DNA from: Diplonema japonicum
Lineage: Eukaryota; Protista; Euglenozoa: Diplonemea
Assembly (NCBI GenBank): GCA_964019335.1
Contig: OZ025676.1
Coordinates: forward strand, 434,001-498,000
Length of the DNA: 64,000 bases
Reading direction: 5' to 3'
The translations under genes were made by a program, and so were the position numbers. Positions 3,564 through 8,817 of this stretch are shown piece after piece. Under the pieces are notes generated by a model, which had not been told where the DNA came from, ran no database searches, and saw only the letters and a program-made list of their open reading frames with translations. How positions within the stretch are numbered: the stretch's first letter is position 1; each line of letters begins with the position of its first letter.

Positions 3564-3982
3564 TTAGTTGCTGGAGGTGAAGTTAGCGAGCTGAGTGTCA
3601 AGGTCTTCCTTCGAGACCTCCTTCCTCCTGGGATTATGGTAAACATGAAAACCCCCCACCCCATGTAGCATACTCAACACGCGCAGCGCTCTTACCCTTA
3701 GCTCCCTTGCCACCTTTACCGCCCTTTCCACCCTTGCCACCCCTGCCCTTCTTTCCGAAGCTGCGCTTCTGAGTTGGCTGGGCCTGAACCTGCTGGGGCT
3801 TCGGCTGTGTCCTGGCACCGCCCCTGCCCCTGGACACAGCTCCACCACGGCCACCCTTGTTCCCGTCACCACGTGCAGTCGACACAGAGATCTCCTTGTC
3901 ACCTGATTGTGTAGTTCAGGTCGTTGTTAAAAAGTCTTGTTTCTCCGAACTTAGTGAAGAAAAAATGCCACCACCTGGGATT

Positions 3983-4031
<49 letters not shown>

Positions 4032-7000
4032 AAGCGGCTTCGAGAATATGCTTTTTTTTTTCAAAATACCAATAGGTGCCACCATGGGGGAGCAACACCT
4101 GGGAAGGGGAAAGGTGAAGGGAAGCATGGAAATATTACAGGGAGGGCGAAGACCAGTTCTTCTGCAATCAGATGGAGCTGTGGACTCCGCCAACCCGTGC
4201 ACCTGTTTGGAACAGCCGAAGAGGGCTGAATTACTTTAATTCCAAGCCGCGTAGACCTACGTGACTCGGACGGGGACCTTGACCCCAGTTCGTCGTTTTT
4301 CTCGACTGGGACCTCTGGTGACCGGAACTGGCCCCGGTCGCCCCCTCGAGAGGGATTTGCTCCATTGAGCGAAACATGAAAGGGTGAGAGTAAGATCTCG
4401 TGTGCGCATGGGGATGATAGGGGAAGCATTTGCTCTCCCCGCTGCACTCCGGCTGGCGGGGGGAGGGGATGGCCGTACCACACTCGTTCGTGCGAAGATG
4501 AGAGGACTCATCTGGGCAACTTCAGAGTAGGCCGGGCCATCCGTTTTTGACTACAATGTCAGGGCACACGATAACAAGAGGATGTTAATTTTAAAAATTT
4601 AAAAGTTTAAAAGGGGACGGGCATACTGGTAAGAGAAAGGCCAGACGCCGGATGATGATAAAGAAAAGGATGAGAGGGAGTGGAAGAGAGGGGAAGGGAA
4701 CGTAAGCACTAAAAGAATTGAAATGTTGATCTCACCCTACTCACTTCAGCGCAACACGGGGGCCGCAGGGCCGGCGTCAAGGGAGACAGCCGGCGGGATG
4801 AACGAAGGGGCAGCGGTACCTGCCGTTGCCGCAGACGGCGACGTGAAGACCCCGGATCTGGCCCAGTCAAGCAAGCCAGAGTCGGCGATGAGGGTGAATA
4901 CCTGCGTCACGCGTTTTGACAGGCACTCCACCAGCGAGGGGCGTCCATTGGGAGCGTCGAGCGAACCCCGTCCAACCACAGCGCACCCCCCAACAACGTG
5001 CTCCCTGGACATCTTTGCTCCACACGCTGGGCAGCTGAGCTCAGCCTTCTTCCTGTTCGGTCCAGCCGCCTGCAGGAAGCCGAAGAAGAGAGCGGAGTGC
5101 CCTACCCTCAGCCGCGAGATGACCGTCTCCGCTAGCCTGGGGAGGGACTGGGGGAAGCACGCCGCTCGGAGCCCCGTGGCCCTCGCGTATCTCGGGGCCA
5201 CCTCCCCGACAATGACCGCAGACCTCTGCTGAATCTGGCGACGGACCAGGGCCCTGACCGACCTGTAGTCGAGAGAGGGGCGAGTCAGCTCGCGCTTCGT
5301 GCCCTCCCCGGCCAGCCTGTCTGCCGCCTCGTTGCCAGGAACCCCGCAGTGGGACGGCACAAACTGGAGAATGACTGGTGCACCTTGTGCACGTGCCGCG
5401 GCCACCAGCAGTTCCCAGGTCTCGTGGTCGAGCCTCTCCCTCTGCCGCGAAGGACCTGCCCTCAGCTGATCAAGGAGAGAGAGCGAGTCGGTACAGATCG
5501 ACAGCCGGCTGTCTGCCAACGTGGGGTGCTCGCTCCGGAGCGCGGCCACCATGTCCAGAGCCACCTTGACAGCCAGACCCTCCGCCCGAAAGGAAGAGCA
5601 GAAATTGCTGACGCCGAAGCTCTCGGACACGGGTTCGTGGGGGCGGGGGAGCTGCAAGTAGACCCCGGCGCCGCCCCTCCACCTCTGGCGGTCCCGTACG
5701 ACAGAACCATCCGTATAGGCATGGATACCCGGTGGAAGGGCAGCCAGAGCCTCCACGGCCGCCTTCCGCTTATCCACGTCCGGCGACGAACGCGTGACCC
5801 TGCCGGGAAGGGCAGTTCTGAACTCCACCAGGAACGCGTGCCACGGTGCTACTTTGGGCGAGGCAGTCAGTAGCTCGAAGGTGTCGTACTTCCTGAAGCC
5901 TTCCTGCGTCGTCCACCCCTGCAGTCCGCAGCGTCGTAGCGCAAGGATACCCGCACGCAGCCACCCATTGCCCATACCGGTCATCCGCTTCTGCTCAAGG
6001 ACCTCGCGGTGAACCGGGGAGGTCCTCCAGCAGAACGACTTCGCCGTCAACACCGCCGCAGCTCCCTCAGCCATCTGTCGGAGGGGTAGCAGACCTGCCT
6101 CAGCAACAACCTTCGCCGTGCCCGAGCCGTGCCAACAACCCGAGATCAGCACCGCCGCTCTCTGGTGGAGCCCAACAAGCTCCTCCACCCTGCTGTCCCT
6201 GAGCCTGGCAAAGTAAACACCCATGCAGTACCGGAGTAGCGGGAGAACGTACGTGAGGTACAGAGATCGGAGCGTGGCCTTCTTGCACCCCCAGGTCGTG
6301 CCCGACAGGAGCCTTAGTACCCTCAGCCTCTTGTCAGCGCTCCTCAGGACATCCCCCGCATGCTCGTCAAACGTGAGCCCAGAGTCTACAGTGACCCCAA
6401 GATACTTCGCCGACCCACATAGAGGCAAGGGGCGAGCCGCCATGTAACCAATGTCGGACCTCCGGATGGCGGCGGGAATGTCGAAGGACCGTTTGCCACC
6501 CGCCTCCACGACCCGAAAGCCAGACAGCTCACGGACGCCAGACAAGGTCCCACAGGCCCCAACCCCAAGATTAAGGACAGGGTCCTGGAAGGCCCCCGGG
6601 CAAAGCGGGACACGCGACGAAGAGAAGTAGACATTAAGCCGCTTCTGATAGGGAACGCACACTGCCTGCGACTTGCTGGAGCTCAGCAGCATGCCCCGTC
6701 TCCCACACCAGCCCTCAACCGCGTCCATCACAGCCTGGGCCCCTCGCTCAAGACCAGCCAGGTCGCCCTGCCCGGCTGAGACCACCACCGCAACATCGTC
6801 GGCATAAAGAACCGACAGGTCCGCCATCCCAACCAGCAACCTGGCTAGCTCGTCGACGTAGATGGTGTAAAGGACGGGTCCACGAGAATATGCTTTTTTT
6901 TTTTTTTCAAAATACCAATGCAGGGCCGCCATGGAGAGCAACACCTGAGAAAATGGAAAAGAAGGTGAAGGGAAACCATGGGGAAATAGGGAGGGCAAAG

Positions 7001-8817
7001 GACCAGGCTTCTGCAAGCAGGAGGAGCCCTGGTCCCCCACCAACCCGTGCTCTGCTTTGGGACAGCCGAAGAGGGCTGAATTACATTATTCCCTCAGTCA
7101 AGTGAGAGAAAAACGGGGGCCTACCTTCCAGCTGGATGTCCTTCTTTGGCTGGAACCTCCGGCGGAAAGCCCCCCAGGGAGGTATTGCTCCTATTGAGCG
7201 AATCATTGGTGAGTGTGAAATAAAAGGGGAAATGGGAAACAGTGAGAGGAAGGAGAAGGAAGGGAAAGGAAAGTGGGAAACACAACATTCCATTTAACAC
7301 ACACACACGGGGCGATCCCTTAGCGCAGCACGGGGGCCGCGGGACCGGCGTCAAGAGAGACCGGAGGAGGAGGCGGCACGTTTGAAGGTGCAGTGACGTC
7401 TGTAGACGCCAGGGATGATGGCGAGGTGAACAGTCCGGAGCGTGACCAGGCGAGCAGGCCAGACTCAACAATGAGGTCGTAGATCTGGGTCACGCGTCTC
7501 GACAGGGAGAACGCTAGGGAGGGAGTACCAGCAGGAGTGTCGATCGCCCCCCTCCCGATCACAGGGCACCCACCGACAACATGCTCCCTGGACATCGGTG
7601 CTGCGTGGCAGGCTGGGCACCGGAGCACACCCTTGTGCTTCCTGTTCGGGCCAGCAGTCTGCAGGAAGCCGAAGAAGAGAGCCGAGTGACCAATCCGCAG
7701 CCGCGAGATGACCGTTTCAGCTTGTCTGGGGAAGCCAAGGGGGAAGTGCGCAGACCGAAGCTCGGTCGCCACCGCGTAGTTGTGGGCGAGGGATGTTATG
7801 AGCTCCGCGGACCTCCGCACCACCCACCGTCGCACCAGGGCCCTCACTGATCGGTAGTCAAGGGAGGGCCTGTCCTGCTTCCGCTTCGTTCCCTCCCCGG
7901 CCAGAGCGTCAGCCTTCTCGTTCCCGTCCACCCCACAGTGGGAGGGCACAAACTGGAGGACCACCGGTGTCCCCTGCGTGCGCGCCGCGGACACCAGCCG
8001 GCTCCACGTCTGGTGGTCGAGCTTCTCCCTCTGTCGCGTTGGGCCAGCTCGCAGCTGCTCGACGAGGGAGAGGGAGTCGGTGCAGATCGACAGCGGGGAC
8101 TTCGCCAGCGAAGGGTGTGTTTTTCGGAGGGTAGCCACCATATCCAGCGCCGTTTTCACAGCCATGCCCTCTGCCCGAAAAGAGAATATGCTCGGCACAA
8201 TTTTTGTTCTCAACACTGATTTTAATTTTACCCATACCAAGCTTGGCCCCATCAAGGTCGGCAATGGCTTGGCGGGCCCCCTGCTCAGTGCGGTAAGCAA
8301 CGAGGGCATTGCCGGTGGGCCTGCCTGCGGTGTCCCAGAAGATGGTGAGCTTCTCGATCTCTCCTGCGGTCTCCATGACGTGCTGTGATGATGGTTACTG
8401 GCTTCTGACCCTCCCCCAACACACCAGAACATCCTGCTCTTCCCAGTCGAACGGGACACCTGTCACGAAGACGCGCGTCTTGTTCTGCGGGGCCTTCACG
8501 ACCTGTCGTTGGATCACAGCCTTGCCACCGCCGCCACGCCCCTGTTATGTGGCTTGAAGTCTTTGATTTCTATTTCATACCCTGCTAGCCGACTGGGAGT
8601 AAGGCTGGGCTCTGTTGTTGGAGGCCGTCTTGACGGCGTTGAAGCCCGCACCAGCCTGCCTACCGCCCCTGCCAGCGGAAGCGGAACGGCCTCTCCCACC
8701 AGTGGGCTTACCACCAGCACCCCTACCACCACCCTTGCTGCCACCACGGCCTTTACCACGCGAGGTAGTCTTCTTTTCGCTGATGAGCTCTTCGAGGGAC
8801 TTTGTTAGCATCGCCAT
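3564..8817 (-). CDS. ALY/REF (Yra1/THOC4)-like mRNA export adaptor, 5 exons: 8817-8581, 8541-8425, 8382-8238, 3902-3674, 3627-3564
   Basis: N-terminal LTKSLEELI motif, RGG region, RRM (RVFVTGVPFDWEEQDVL…GNALVAY…LDGAKLG|DKEISVSTA), second RGG region and C-terminal KEVSKEDLDTQL motif. Four GT-AG introns (8542-8580, 8383-8424, 3903-8237, 3628-3673) all restore the frame. Confidence 0.85.
3966..4038 (-). tRNA. tRNA-Phe (GAA), intronic
   Basis: 73-nt cloverleaf GCCGCTTTAGCTCAGTTGGGAGAGCGTCAGACT-GAA-GATCTGAAGGTCCCTGGTTCAATCCCAGGTGGTGGCA, followed by a T-run terminator. U-U mismatch at 7:66. Confidence 0.95.
4052..6882 (-). mobile_element. 5'-truncated non-LTR retrotransposon A (RT C-half, RNase H, Zn finger; ingi/I-group-like)
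   Basis: Open ORF to the stop at 4746 with GPVLY…YADD, KYLGV, RNase H motifs YTDGS / TDSLS / VPSHCGVPGNEAAD and CPAC…H…C. Poly(A) at 4052-4061; flanking duplication CGAGAATATGC at 4041-4051 and 6883-6893. Confidence 0.92.
6894..8181 (-). mobile_element. 5'-truncated non-LTR retrotransposon B (RNase H, Zn finger), diverged relative of A
   Basis: ORF to the stop at 7320 is homologous to the C-terminus of A. It shares the ~200-nt 3' tail. Poly(A) at 6894-6907; duplication GAGAATATGC at 6884-6893 and 8182-8191. Confidence 0.9.

Follow-up and report, generated by a model that had tools for sequence, protein, structure and literature searches.

Background

How do two different LINEs come to lie one behind the other at the very same base upstream of a single tRNA gene? 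This question is raised by a stretch of 64,000 nucleotides from the genome of Diplonema japonicum YPF1604 (hereafter the window, to which all coordinates refer), in which an earlier note, made from the letters alone, had seen two stacked elements and inferred an ingi-like lineage with position-specific insertion near the Pol III start site. Transposons that find safe harbours in compact genomes are classically exemplified by those that target Pol III genes. To our knowledge, such targeting has been documented for LINEs only in dictyostelid amoebae. We used the anatomy of the stack, full-length relatives of its elements and a census of their insertion sites to investigate this question. We consider it very likely that the stack arose by two separate target-primed insertions, by sister LINE families of the APE type that target tRNA genes by position and not by sequence.

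Organization of the stack at the tRNA-Phe gene

On the minus strand the locus reads as a 10-bp target copy, element B, an 11-bp copy, element A, a second 11-bp copy, the dinucleotide AA and tRNA-Phe, base for base the layout given in the earlier note. The upstream target copy (GCATATTCTC; 8191-8182) is followed by element B, a 5'-truncated member of LINE family B (8181-6894; 1.29 kb) that ends in a poly(A) tail of 14 A (6907-6894). The middle copy (GCATATTCTCG; 6893-6883) serves both as the 3' duplication of B and as the 5' duplication of A. Element A, a 5'-truncated member of LINE family A (6881-4052; 2.83 kb), has a poly(A) tail of 10 A (4061-4052) and adjoins the tRNA-proximal copy (GCATATTCTCG; 4051-4041), which spans -13 to -3 from the mature tRNA 5' end. 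An AA spacer (4040-4039), the intact target gene tRNA-Phe(GAA) (4038-3966; detected with ARAGORN, Rfam tRNA 61.6 bits) and a T6 terminator (3965-3960) complete the arrangement. These coordinates also bear out that both poly(A) tails adjoin one base, a G that lies 13 nt 5' of the mature tRNA-Phe. As for the duplication lengths originally put at 10 and 11 bp, the 11 bp of A stand, but the 5' duplication of B has to be given as 8-10 bp, since the final two nucleotides of its upstream copy (TC) are assignable to either target or element and may be microhomology with B. A single untemplated T at the 5' junction of element A (6882, minus strand) is a small correction to the original description.

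The tRNA gene and both elements are contained in a GT-AG intron of 4,335 nt (3903-8237, minus strand) of a gene encoding an RRM domain with an RGG tail (ALY/REF-like); its splicing is seen in contigs from both X1 and X2, where 3900 is followed directly by 8236, and devoid of insertions the intron would measure ~194 nt.

The coding remnants of the two elements differ in extent. That of A (6881-4746, minus strand) comprises 711 codons of ORF2 without a stop, covering the C-terminal part of the reverse transcriptase (RT) with the YADD motif, RNase H and a CCHC motif. That of B (8180-7320, minus strand) comprises 286 codons and a stop, and preserves no more than the C-terminal portion of RNase H plus the CCHC motif. 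With ~72% nucleotide identity in their common coding part and 75% amino acid identity in ORF2, A and B are members of two sister LINE families. Element A aligns with a 7.29-kb full-length A from position 4465 to 7286 with 2 mismatches (99.93% identity), and element B with a 7.61-kb full-length B from position 6315 to 7603 at 97.8% identity, so that their truncation points (4465 versus 6315) are distinct; the 3' UTRs also differ, and A and B each carry a separate poly(A) and duplication. The view that the stack records two independent events of target-primed reverse transcription rather than a tandem duplication is upheld by these differences. Across the family copies the median 3'-end identity is 98.7%. 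The open frame of A, previously taken as a sign of recent activity, does indicate that family A is young, but the copy in the window is 5'-truncated and hence cannot move by itself.

An assembly artefact, or tandem duplication of one element, might be suspected, as these repeats are near-identical across the genome and short-read contigs break within them, ending at all junctions and bridging none of the three in the stack, which are thus known from the HiFi assembly alone. However, the PacBio HiFi reads behind this assembly average ~9 kb (QV 59; PMC13598402) and exceed the 4.2-kb stack, the ~28% nucleotide difference between A and B and their separate ends do not fit the copying of one element, and stacks of the same design are found at many other tRNA genes. 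Such an origin of the stack thus appears highly improbable.

Architecture of the full-length elements

The earlier note had called for recovery of a full-length copy and identification of its endonuclease; the full-length copies of families A and B that we recovered measure 7.3-7.6 kb and encode an endonuclease of the APE type. Their 5' ends consist of (GAAAA)n repeats, which form the 5' UTR, and a spliced leader is present at the start of two A copies. There follow ORF1, one in-frame stop, 47 codons, a 2A motif (ETNPGP), APE, RT, RNase H and the CCHC motif. ORF1, with 742 aa in A and 950 aa in B, is in the same frame as ORF2, from which a single stop separates it, and no homologue or domain was detected for it. 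Pfam identifies APE (PF03372/PF14529), RT (PF00078; E 7e-35) and RNase H (PF00075) in the full-length ORF2, and the C-terminal zinc motif is one C-x2-C-x7/8-H-x4-C. No Rfam family, ribozymes included, was matched at gathering score by either of two full-length copies, L045 and L066. A EukProt Trinity transcript matches the ORF2 of family B with 100% identity. The combination of APE, RT, poly(A) tails of 8-33 nt, duplications of 9-40 bp, and truncated alongside full-length copies places these elements among the APE-type LINEs.

Insertion sites across the genome

The exact 3'-terminal 20-mer of the elements has 153 matches in the genome and none in a reversed control, and the first 100 of these 153 matches constitute our census. 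A tRNA gene begins 1-13 nt downstream in 35 of the 100 3' ends, with 23 isoacceptors being represented; element and tRNA have the same orientation in all 35, and no opposite-strand tRNA was seen within 40 nt. Since only ~0.02 such cases per 100 are expected by chance, taking at most ~1,600 tRNA genes in 62.5 Mb, and the reversed control has no matches, chance adjacency is excluded. The distances of family A are 5, 10, 12, 12, 12, 12, 13 and 13 nt, that is, mostly at -12/-13, and those of family B are spread broadly over 1-13 nt, being lower bounds wherever the target begins with A. Thus, the elements display three features of Pol III-targeting LINEs: a fixed range of distances to tRNA genes of many isotypes, one orientation and, rarely, use of 5S rRNA genes. 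Such use is clear in one of 13 5S genes, where the family-B copy L084 lies 8 nt before the gene (102.6 bits) with a 15-bp duplication; one further gene with an upstream A-run was not counted as clear. Occasional insertion at a 5S rRNA gene would fit a cue residing in the Pol III complex.

Most of the 3' ends that are not at tRNA or 5S genes lie within stacks that repeat one target duplication. In 24 of the 100 another A or B element follows after a short duplication, 5 precede tRNA-like units bearing a B box and a T-run, ~25 precede other repeat families, and in fewer than 10 were the flanks assigned to neither a Pol III gene nor a stack. In stacks that end on a tRNA gene the duplication recurs three times in the window, four times at L074/L075 and twice each at L044, L066 and L076. 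When viewed from the side of the targets, 23 of 60 sampled tRNA genes (~38%) are occupied by this LINE guild, 11 of these by A or B.

The same 10-11 bp flank both elements in the window, and this could suggest that the endonuclease recognises a DNA sequence such as GCATATTCTC, with the link to the tRNA being secondary. The sequences that follow the poly(A) tails, a tabulation of which the earlier note had proposed, instead point to position: they comprise many tRNA isoacceptors at 1-13 nt, the bases differ at every tRNA gene without any motif (for example CTAGAAAACACA, CGGCGGTTGTAA, TATATCCGCGTA and GGAAATCGAC), and the duplications are unrelated, with sizes of 9-11 bp, of 27 bp and of at least 40 bp besides the 15 bp found at the 5S gene. 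What is common is the distance to the tRNA and the orientation, and the identical duplications in the window are explained by the same position having been targeted twice. We hence attach very little credence to sequence recognition; across the tRNA-adjoining copies, the unrelated flanks refute a sequence-specific endonuclease.

Another possibility is that insertion is random and that selection spares only those copies that do no harm, as in tRNA leaders. The flanks of tRNA genes are indeed known safe havens, and most LINE insertions into genes would be purged. However, the copies are about 98-100% identical, leaving little time for purging, and other neutral space, such as kilobase introns and repeats, is plentiful. 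Moreover, selection cannot yield a 13-nt window, the preference of family A for -12/-13, 35 of 35 insertions in one orientation or repeated hits on the same base, and we therefore judge this explanation to be quite improbable.

Finally, the tRNA genes could have been carried along by the elements, through 3' transduction or as chimeric retrocopies, so that the adjacency is inherited; chimeric small-RNA/LINE retrocopies are known in other genomes, and 5S fragments are present in some of the flanks (L005, L006 and L095). This is difficult to reconcile with duplications that enclose the element alone, leaving the tRNA outside, with the position of the tRNA gene after the poly(A) and not before it, and with the same element preceding 23 isoacceptors, each with its own leader. 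Empty paralogues of the occupied tRNA genes also exist in the genome. Transport of tRNA genes is the explanation to which we give the least weight of all, and for the tRNA-adjoining copies it is refuted by the exclusion of the tRNA from the duplications and by the empty paralogues.

A model for position-specific insertion

Under position-specific targeting, the element endonuclease would make its bottom-strand nick at a defined position before the tRNA gene, between -14/-13 or -13/-12 in family A and anywhere from -13 to -1 in family B, such that the poly(A) would always face the tRNA 5' end. A second nick would fall 9-11 bp downstream, at times within the tRNA gene itself. The duplicated target would then rebuild the leader, together with the first tRNA bases if needed, and the gene would thereby stay intact. 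The duplication would also remake the site beside the tRNA and shift older copies outward, so that the same site could be hit again and stacks could form. In the window, B would have been inserted first and A later at the same base. ORF1p or ORF2p probably recognises the site through the Pol III pre-initiation complex (TFIIIB/TFIIIC/Pol III); a precedent for dependence on TFIIIB/TFIIIC is provided by TRE5-A (PMC5911963).

Upstream of empty tRNA genes the sequence is A/T-rich from -30 to -21 and C/G-rich from -18 to -15. The A/T-rich 3' end of an inserted element, together with its poly(A), would replace the native A/T-rich box, and the gene would remain usable and open to further targeting. 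More speculatively, and with considerable doubt as to the whole, these elements may form an independently evolved diplonemid LINE guild that reads the Pol III pre-initiation complex and nicks at most 13 bases before tRNA genes, with A/T-rich 3' ends and poly(A) standing in for the displaced box, and that is expressed from trans-spliced mRNAs, with ORF2 produced via stop read-through followed by 2A skipping. If this combined scenario holds, each insertion leaves behind a working tRNA gene and a fresh landing pad, which would account for the multi-layer stacks.

These observations have several implications. That Discoba, as a third and unrelated eukaryotic lineage, reaches the same solution adds weight to the view that such targeting evolved convergently. 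Very young copies, intact full-length elements and a matching transcript offer a natural system for the study of complex-guided placement of an APE-type LINE, and the question of how a transcription complex could place a LINE with a precision of a few bases is relevant to the engineering of site-directed retrotransposon tools. In the genomics of diplonemids, these insertions account for kilobase introns and repeat blocks beside tRNA genes and supply a rule for annotation.

Comparison with known retrotransposons

The elements had been called ingi-like, and with ingi/L1Tc they do share a euglenozoan host, the order APE-RT-RNase H, poly(A), duplications of ~10-12 bp and an APE-RT protein that begins with a 2A peptide (PMC3894237). 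The 2A peptide occurs in other LINE clades too and is thus not diagnostic of Ingi (PMC3894237). Two features go against the label: the ingi clade has no ORF1 (PMC3894237), whereas that of the Diplonema elements has 742-950 aa, and its C-terminus bears two C2H2 motifs (C2-L1Tc; PMC2805920) in place of one CCHC. A further, possible difference lies at the 5' end, where the ingi clade carries a 77-nt Pr77 promoter/HDV-like ribozyme (PMC12278014, PMC3185411) and the Diplonema elements a (GAAAA)n 5' UTR with no Rfam ribozyme match at gathering score. Protein database searches returned no trypanosomatid-labelled match, and our literature search found no report of Pol III gene targeting by ingi/L1Tc or of tRNA-gene-targeting LINEs in Euglenozoa. 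The likeness to ingi is hence only a resemblance.

TRE5-A and TRE3 of Dictyostelium discoideum are likewise APE-type elements that target tRNA genes by position via the Pol III machinery, and TRE5-A also inserts at 5S genes, as in the rare Diplonema case. Occupancy of tRNA genes reaches 61% in D. discoideum versus ~38% of the Diplonema sample. The placement is different, with TRE5 inserting ~48 bp upstream in opposite orientation and TRE3 ~100 bp downstream, whereas the Diplonema elements lie 1-13 nt upstream and share the orientation of the tRNA gene. In addition, TRE5 and TRE3 have a zinc finger but no RNase H and express ORF2 by a -1 frameshift (PMC5911963). Ty3 of Saccharomyces cerevisiae, Tj1 and DGLT-A also insert a few bases from the Pol III start of tRNA and 5S genes, but these are LTR retrotransposons whose integrase is tethered to TFIIIB, and no target-primed reverse transcription is involved.

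Among published elements, the nearest analogue is NLTR-A of Dictyostelium purpureum (Spaller et al. 2016, PMC5006619; PMC5911963, table 1), an APE-type LINE with RNase H after RT that inserts 2-6 bp before tRNA genes (PMC5006619). Its host belongs to Amoebozoa rather than Discoba, and its ORFs overlap by 13 bp, whereas ORF1 and ORF2 of the Diplonema elements share one frame with a single stop and a 2A peptide between them. Unlike NLTR-A, the Diplonema elements reach -13, with -12/-13 being the mode of family A, and their copy number and stacking are far higher. The likeness to NLTR-A is one of described features. The nearest database proteins of the Diplonema elements are diplonemid, with transcripts matching at 41-44%, and metagenome proteins without a name also appear among the neighbours. 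The earlier note knew of no description of such targeting; our literature search agrees with this for Euglenozoa, but a LINE with RNase H that inserts near tRNA genes was already known in NLTR-A (PMC5006619). Thus, what is new about the behaviour of the Diplonema elements is the lineage and supergroup in which it occurs, whereas its kind was already known.

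Two stacked LINE insertions beside a tRNA-Phe gene

On the minus strand of the window, a tRNA-Phe(GAA) gene (4038-3966; ARAGORN; Rfam tRNA, 61.6 bits) with a T6 terminator after it is preceded by two LINE copies, A and B, and by three copies of a repeated target-site duplication that ends at the gene. Read towards the tRNA, the order is an outer duplication copy GCATATTCTC (8191-8182), element B ending in a 14-A tail (8181-6894), a middle duplication copy GCATATTCTCG (6893-6883), a single extra T (6882), element A ending in a 10-A tail (6881-4052), and a tRNA-proximal duplication copy GCATATTCTCG (4051-4041) followed by AA. 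The poly(A) tails of A and B adjoin the same G, 13 nt upstream of the mature tRNA-Phe 5' end. This layout is the one described in an earlier note on this DNA, with slight corrections to the duplications: that at the 5' end of B is 8-10 bp long, with 2 nt attributable to either target or element, and the T at the 5' junction of A is untemplated. The window copy of A has 711 codons of open reading frame, coding for the last part of the reverse transcriptase (RT) domain (YADD), for RNase H and for a C-x2-C-x7-H-x4-C motif; of these, B retains only the motif and the final part of RNase H.

tRNA-Phe, A and B lie within an intron, as contigs of runs X1 and X2 connect position 3900 directly with 8236. 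The skipped 4,335 nt have GT..AG ends on the minus strand, allowing a 3-nt ambiguity of the cut, and correspond to a GT-AG intron at 8237-3903 (minus strand), which would measure ~194 nt without the insertions. The host gene is expressed and encodes an RRM protein with an RGG tail (ALY/REF-like). Logan short-read contigs confirm the spliced host mRNA; they break at every element junction and are therefore neutral on the three junctions, and no empty allele of the stack site was seen in these contigs, which break within repeats. We accept the stack because it comes from a HiFi assembly (QV 59, ~9-kb reads) and has many parallels elsewhere. The assembly, of D. japonicum YPF1604, was built from PacBio HiFi and Hi-C data and comprises 62.30 Mb with a longest scaffold of 1,191,308 bp; its data note makes no mention of transposons (PMC13598402).

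Complete copies and recent activity of families A and B

More than 40 genomic copies match the terminal 211 nt of A at 96-100% identity, and the terminal 20-mer common to A and B has 153 exact genomic occurrences against 0 in a reversed control. The first 100 of these 153 exact 3' ends, in contig order, constitute our census sample; by their 3' UTRs 23 belong to family A and 77 to family B, and the median identity among the sampled copies is 98.7%. The earlier note had proposed recovering a full-length copy to establish the endonuclease type, and such copies were found for both families (A, 7.29 kb, in locus L066; B, 7.61 kb, in locus L045). They begin with a (GAAAA)n 5' UTR, followed by ORF1 (742 aa in A, 950 aa in B), one in-frame stop, 47 codons, and ORF2, which has at its N-terminus a 2A-type peptide with the terminal residues ETNPGP and continues with an endonuclease of the APE type, RT (E 7e-35), RNase H and a CCHC motif. 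The A and B proteins are 75% identical in ORF2 and 54% in ORF1. The window copy of A corresponds to positions 4465-7286 of full-length A, differing at 2 of these 2,822 nt, and that of B to positions 6315-7603 of full-length B, at 97.8% identity. Being members of different families with different truncation points, they are two separate 5'-truncated insertions, as had been claimed, and no duplication of one element. Tandem duplication and assembly artefact are both rejected as sources of the stack, given that A and B are diverged, each with its own truncation and tail, and that parallel stacks occur elsewhere.

ORF1 and ORF2 lie in the same frame, with the one stop and 47 conserved codons between them, in both full-length copies (L045, 3320-3520; L066, 5080-5350, minus strand). 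The common frame, the single stop and the ETNPGP motif together suggest read-through of the stop and then release at the 2A. For a LINE to have both an ORF1 and a 2A peptide is unusual, since to our knowledge published 2A-bearing LINEs mostly lack ORF1. ORF1 itself has no Pfam match and no homologue outside its own cluster among 1.84 billion representatives, and its AlphaFold2 model from the A and B alignment is of very low confidence (pLDDT 35). No conserved 3'-terminal RNA structure was detected, the folding energy of the last 80 nt being that of shuffles (z 0.11 and -1.65).

Copies are near-identical, and full-length ones with intact ORFs are present. ORF2 of B matches a EukProt Trinity transcript at 100% identity, and both A and B are covered by contigs of several public runs. 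A spliced leader of the diplonemid/kinetoplastid type is present in element flanks, and two full-length A copies begin with it (C51:159771-159813, in locus L075, and C78:165816-165863, on two assembly contigs), the junction with the (GAAAA)n 5' UTR falling at a different AG in each. Trans-spliced RNA thus served as template at least twice; a search for a spliced-leader start among family-B copies found none.

Insertion upstream of tRNA and other Pol III genes

In 35 of the 100 sampled 3' ends, a tRNA gene in the same orientation begins 1-13 nt after the poly(A), against a chance expectation of ~0.02 per 100 ends (from at most ~1,600 tRNA genes in 62.5 Mb), and no opposite-strand tRNA lies within 40 nt of any sampled end. 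The sampled copies target 23 isoacceptors, at distances of 5, 10, 12, 12, 12, 12, 13 and 13 nt for family A and 1-13 nt, chiefly 4-7 and 10-13, for family B, these being lower bounds where the target begins with A. The bases directly after the tail are different at each tRNA gene, and a sequence-specific target is accordingly rejected. The main inference of the earlier note, position-specific insertion before tRNA genes, is hence supported: genes of different isotypes lie within 1-13 nt of the tails, with no target sequence shared among them. That the tRNA might be carried along with the element is rejected on account of the duplications, which flank the element alone and leave the tRNA outside, and of the 23 isoacceptors. 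Selection acting as the only filter on insertions is likewise incompatible with the near-identity of the copies, the narrow distance window, the one orientation and the repeated insertions at the same base.

Among the remaining ends, one family-B copy has a 5S rRNA gene 8 nt downstream (102.6 bits). Five copies (L036, L055, L059, L065, L067) are followed after 12-14 nt by tRNA-like units with a B-box-like GGTTCGA and a T-run terminator, which were recognised neither by ARAGORN nor, even at E 0.1, by Rfam; these were counted only as B-box-containing, T-run-terminated units, and could be SINE heads or else tRNA genes that are degenerate or contain an intron. For a further 24 ends a short duplication leads into another element of family A or B, and ~25 ends run into other repeat families having their own 5' ends. 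Fewer than 10 of the 100 lack an assigned flank. At three loci (L005, L006, L095) the sequence beyond a family-A poly(A) consists of ~45 nt from the 3' end of 5S rRNA and, next to it, the 5' end of another element family, reflecting either insertion within a 5S gene or a chimeric retrocopy.

A reverse census of the 60 best-scoring tRNA genes found a retroelement 3' end within ~15 nt at 23, and 11 of these elements are A or B. The other 12 genes (L103, L107, L109, L113, L117, L122, L124, L134, L141, L148, L151, L155) are occupied, mostly at 4-6 nt, by families whose tails consist of (TTA)n and then an A-run, with at least three distinguishable 3' ends. The tRNA-Phe genes seen number six, with occupied and empty paralogues among them. 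Upstream of an otherwise empty tRNA-Phe gene, a degenerate ORF1-like remnant (L153, 166-333, minus strand; 51% over 72 aa) may be an old eroded insertion.

Stacks elsewhere and duplication length

In other stacks, too, the duplication recurs and terminates at a tRNA gene: four layers with GGAAATCGA(C) precede a tRNA-Gln gene at L074/L075, and two layers each occur at L044 (tRNA-Cys), L066 (tRNA-Lys) and L076 (tRNA-Asp). Paired duplications are 9-11 bp long as a rule and 15 bp at the 5S gene; those of L066 and L079 (tRNA-Arg) reach 27 bp and at least 40 bp, respectively, and take in 15 to ~40 bases from the start of the tRNA gene, so that the gene-proximal tRNA copy stays whole. At both loci a partial tRNA 5' piece remains at the far end of the element. 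Stacks also contain tiny retrocopies consisting of the spliced leader, ~9 nt (GGAAGGCTT) and a long poly(A) (L022, ~1700-1790; L077), and in L004 (~1700-1800) a family-A tail precedes three or more tandem units of a 24-nt element fragment with poly(A). On contigs C52, C61, C14 and C15, several element-flank junctions are present in duplicate with identical flanks (e.g. L005/L006, L015/L016, L046/L047), some pairs on opposite strands, which points to segmental duplication, in part inverted, of regions rich in elements.

Proposed order of events and targeting cue

Judged from the sequence, the insertion geometry is that expected of target-primed reverse transcription. A bottom-strand nick would fall where the duplication begins on its upstream side (between -14 and -13 in the window) and be joined by the poly(A), and the top strand would be cut 11 bp beyond it. 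B would have inserted first, its 3' duplication recreating the site beside tRNA-Phe, and A second, at the same base and with duplication of the same 11 bp, yielding the observed order. This succession fits the higher divergence of B; had A come first, B would have needed a site 2.8 kb from the tRNA.

In the absence of a common target sequence, the insertion cue has to be one of position. By analogy, it is most likely the Pol III pre-initiation complex, with which the occasional 5S insertion is consistent; in Dictyostelium TRE5-A, contacts between ORF1p and TFIIIB and dependence on the B-box have been demonstrated (PMC5911963). The 37 empty tRNA genes among L097-L156 are A/T-rich at -30 to -21 and C/G-rich at -18 to -15, stretches which look like an upstream Pol III promoter element. 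After insertion they are swapped for the last bases of the element (GGTATTTTG) and poly(A), again A/T-rich, which may keep the tRNA gene active and re-targetable.

Relationship to known retroelements

The nearest proteins to those of A and B are Diplonema ambulator transcripts, at 41-44%. Two protein searches, the ESM atlas and a PDB sequence search returned only generic LINE matches to the RT, namely L1 and R2 structures, arthropod proteins named BS or R1, and unnamed metagenome proteins, with no ingi or L1Tc and, in the protein searches, no trypanosomatid-labelled match. A metagenome scan yielded 80 distant LINE loci at 22-36% identity. None of the 60 scanned loci has a tRNA downstream of the LINE match, an uninformative result as most contigs end inside the element, and the sole tRNA among them (L170) lies upstream on the opposite strand. 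The earlier note had likened the elements to ingi. A and B resemble ingi/L1Tc in domain order, N-terminal 2A and host phylum, but differ in their large ORF1, one CCHC motif in place of two C2H2 motifs, and (GAAAA)n 5' end; no Rfam ribozyme match was found in the full-length copies of A and B.

Our literature searches turned up no description of retrotransposons that target Pol III genes in diplonemids or any other Euglenozoa, and LINE-like ORFs are listed in the genome paper of D. papillatum with no analysis of their targets. These elements are of clear interest to transposon biologists and diplonemid genome annotators. They form a new lineage with its own variant of a known targeting strategy, and no new kind of system. 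TRE5 (~48 bp upstream of tRNA genes, in the opposite orientation) and TRE3 (downstream) follow the same strategy at other positions, whereas Ty3-type LTR elements share the position but differ in mechanism (PMC5911963). Most similar is NLTR-A of D. purpureum, a LINE with APE, RT and RNase H that lies 2-6 bp before tRNA genes (PMC5006619).
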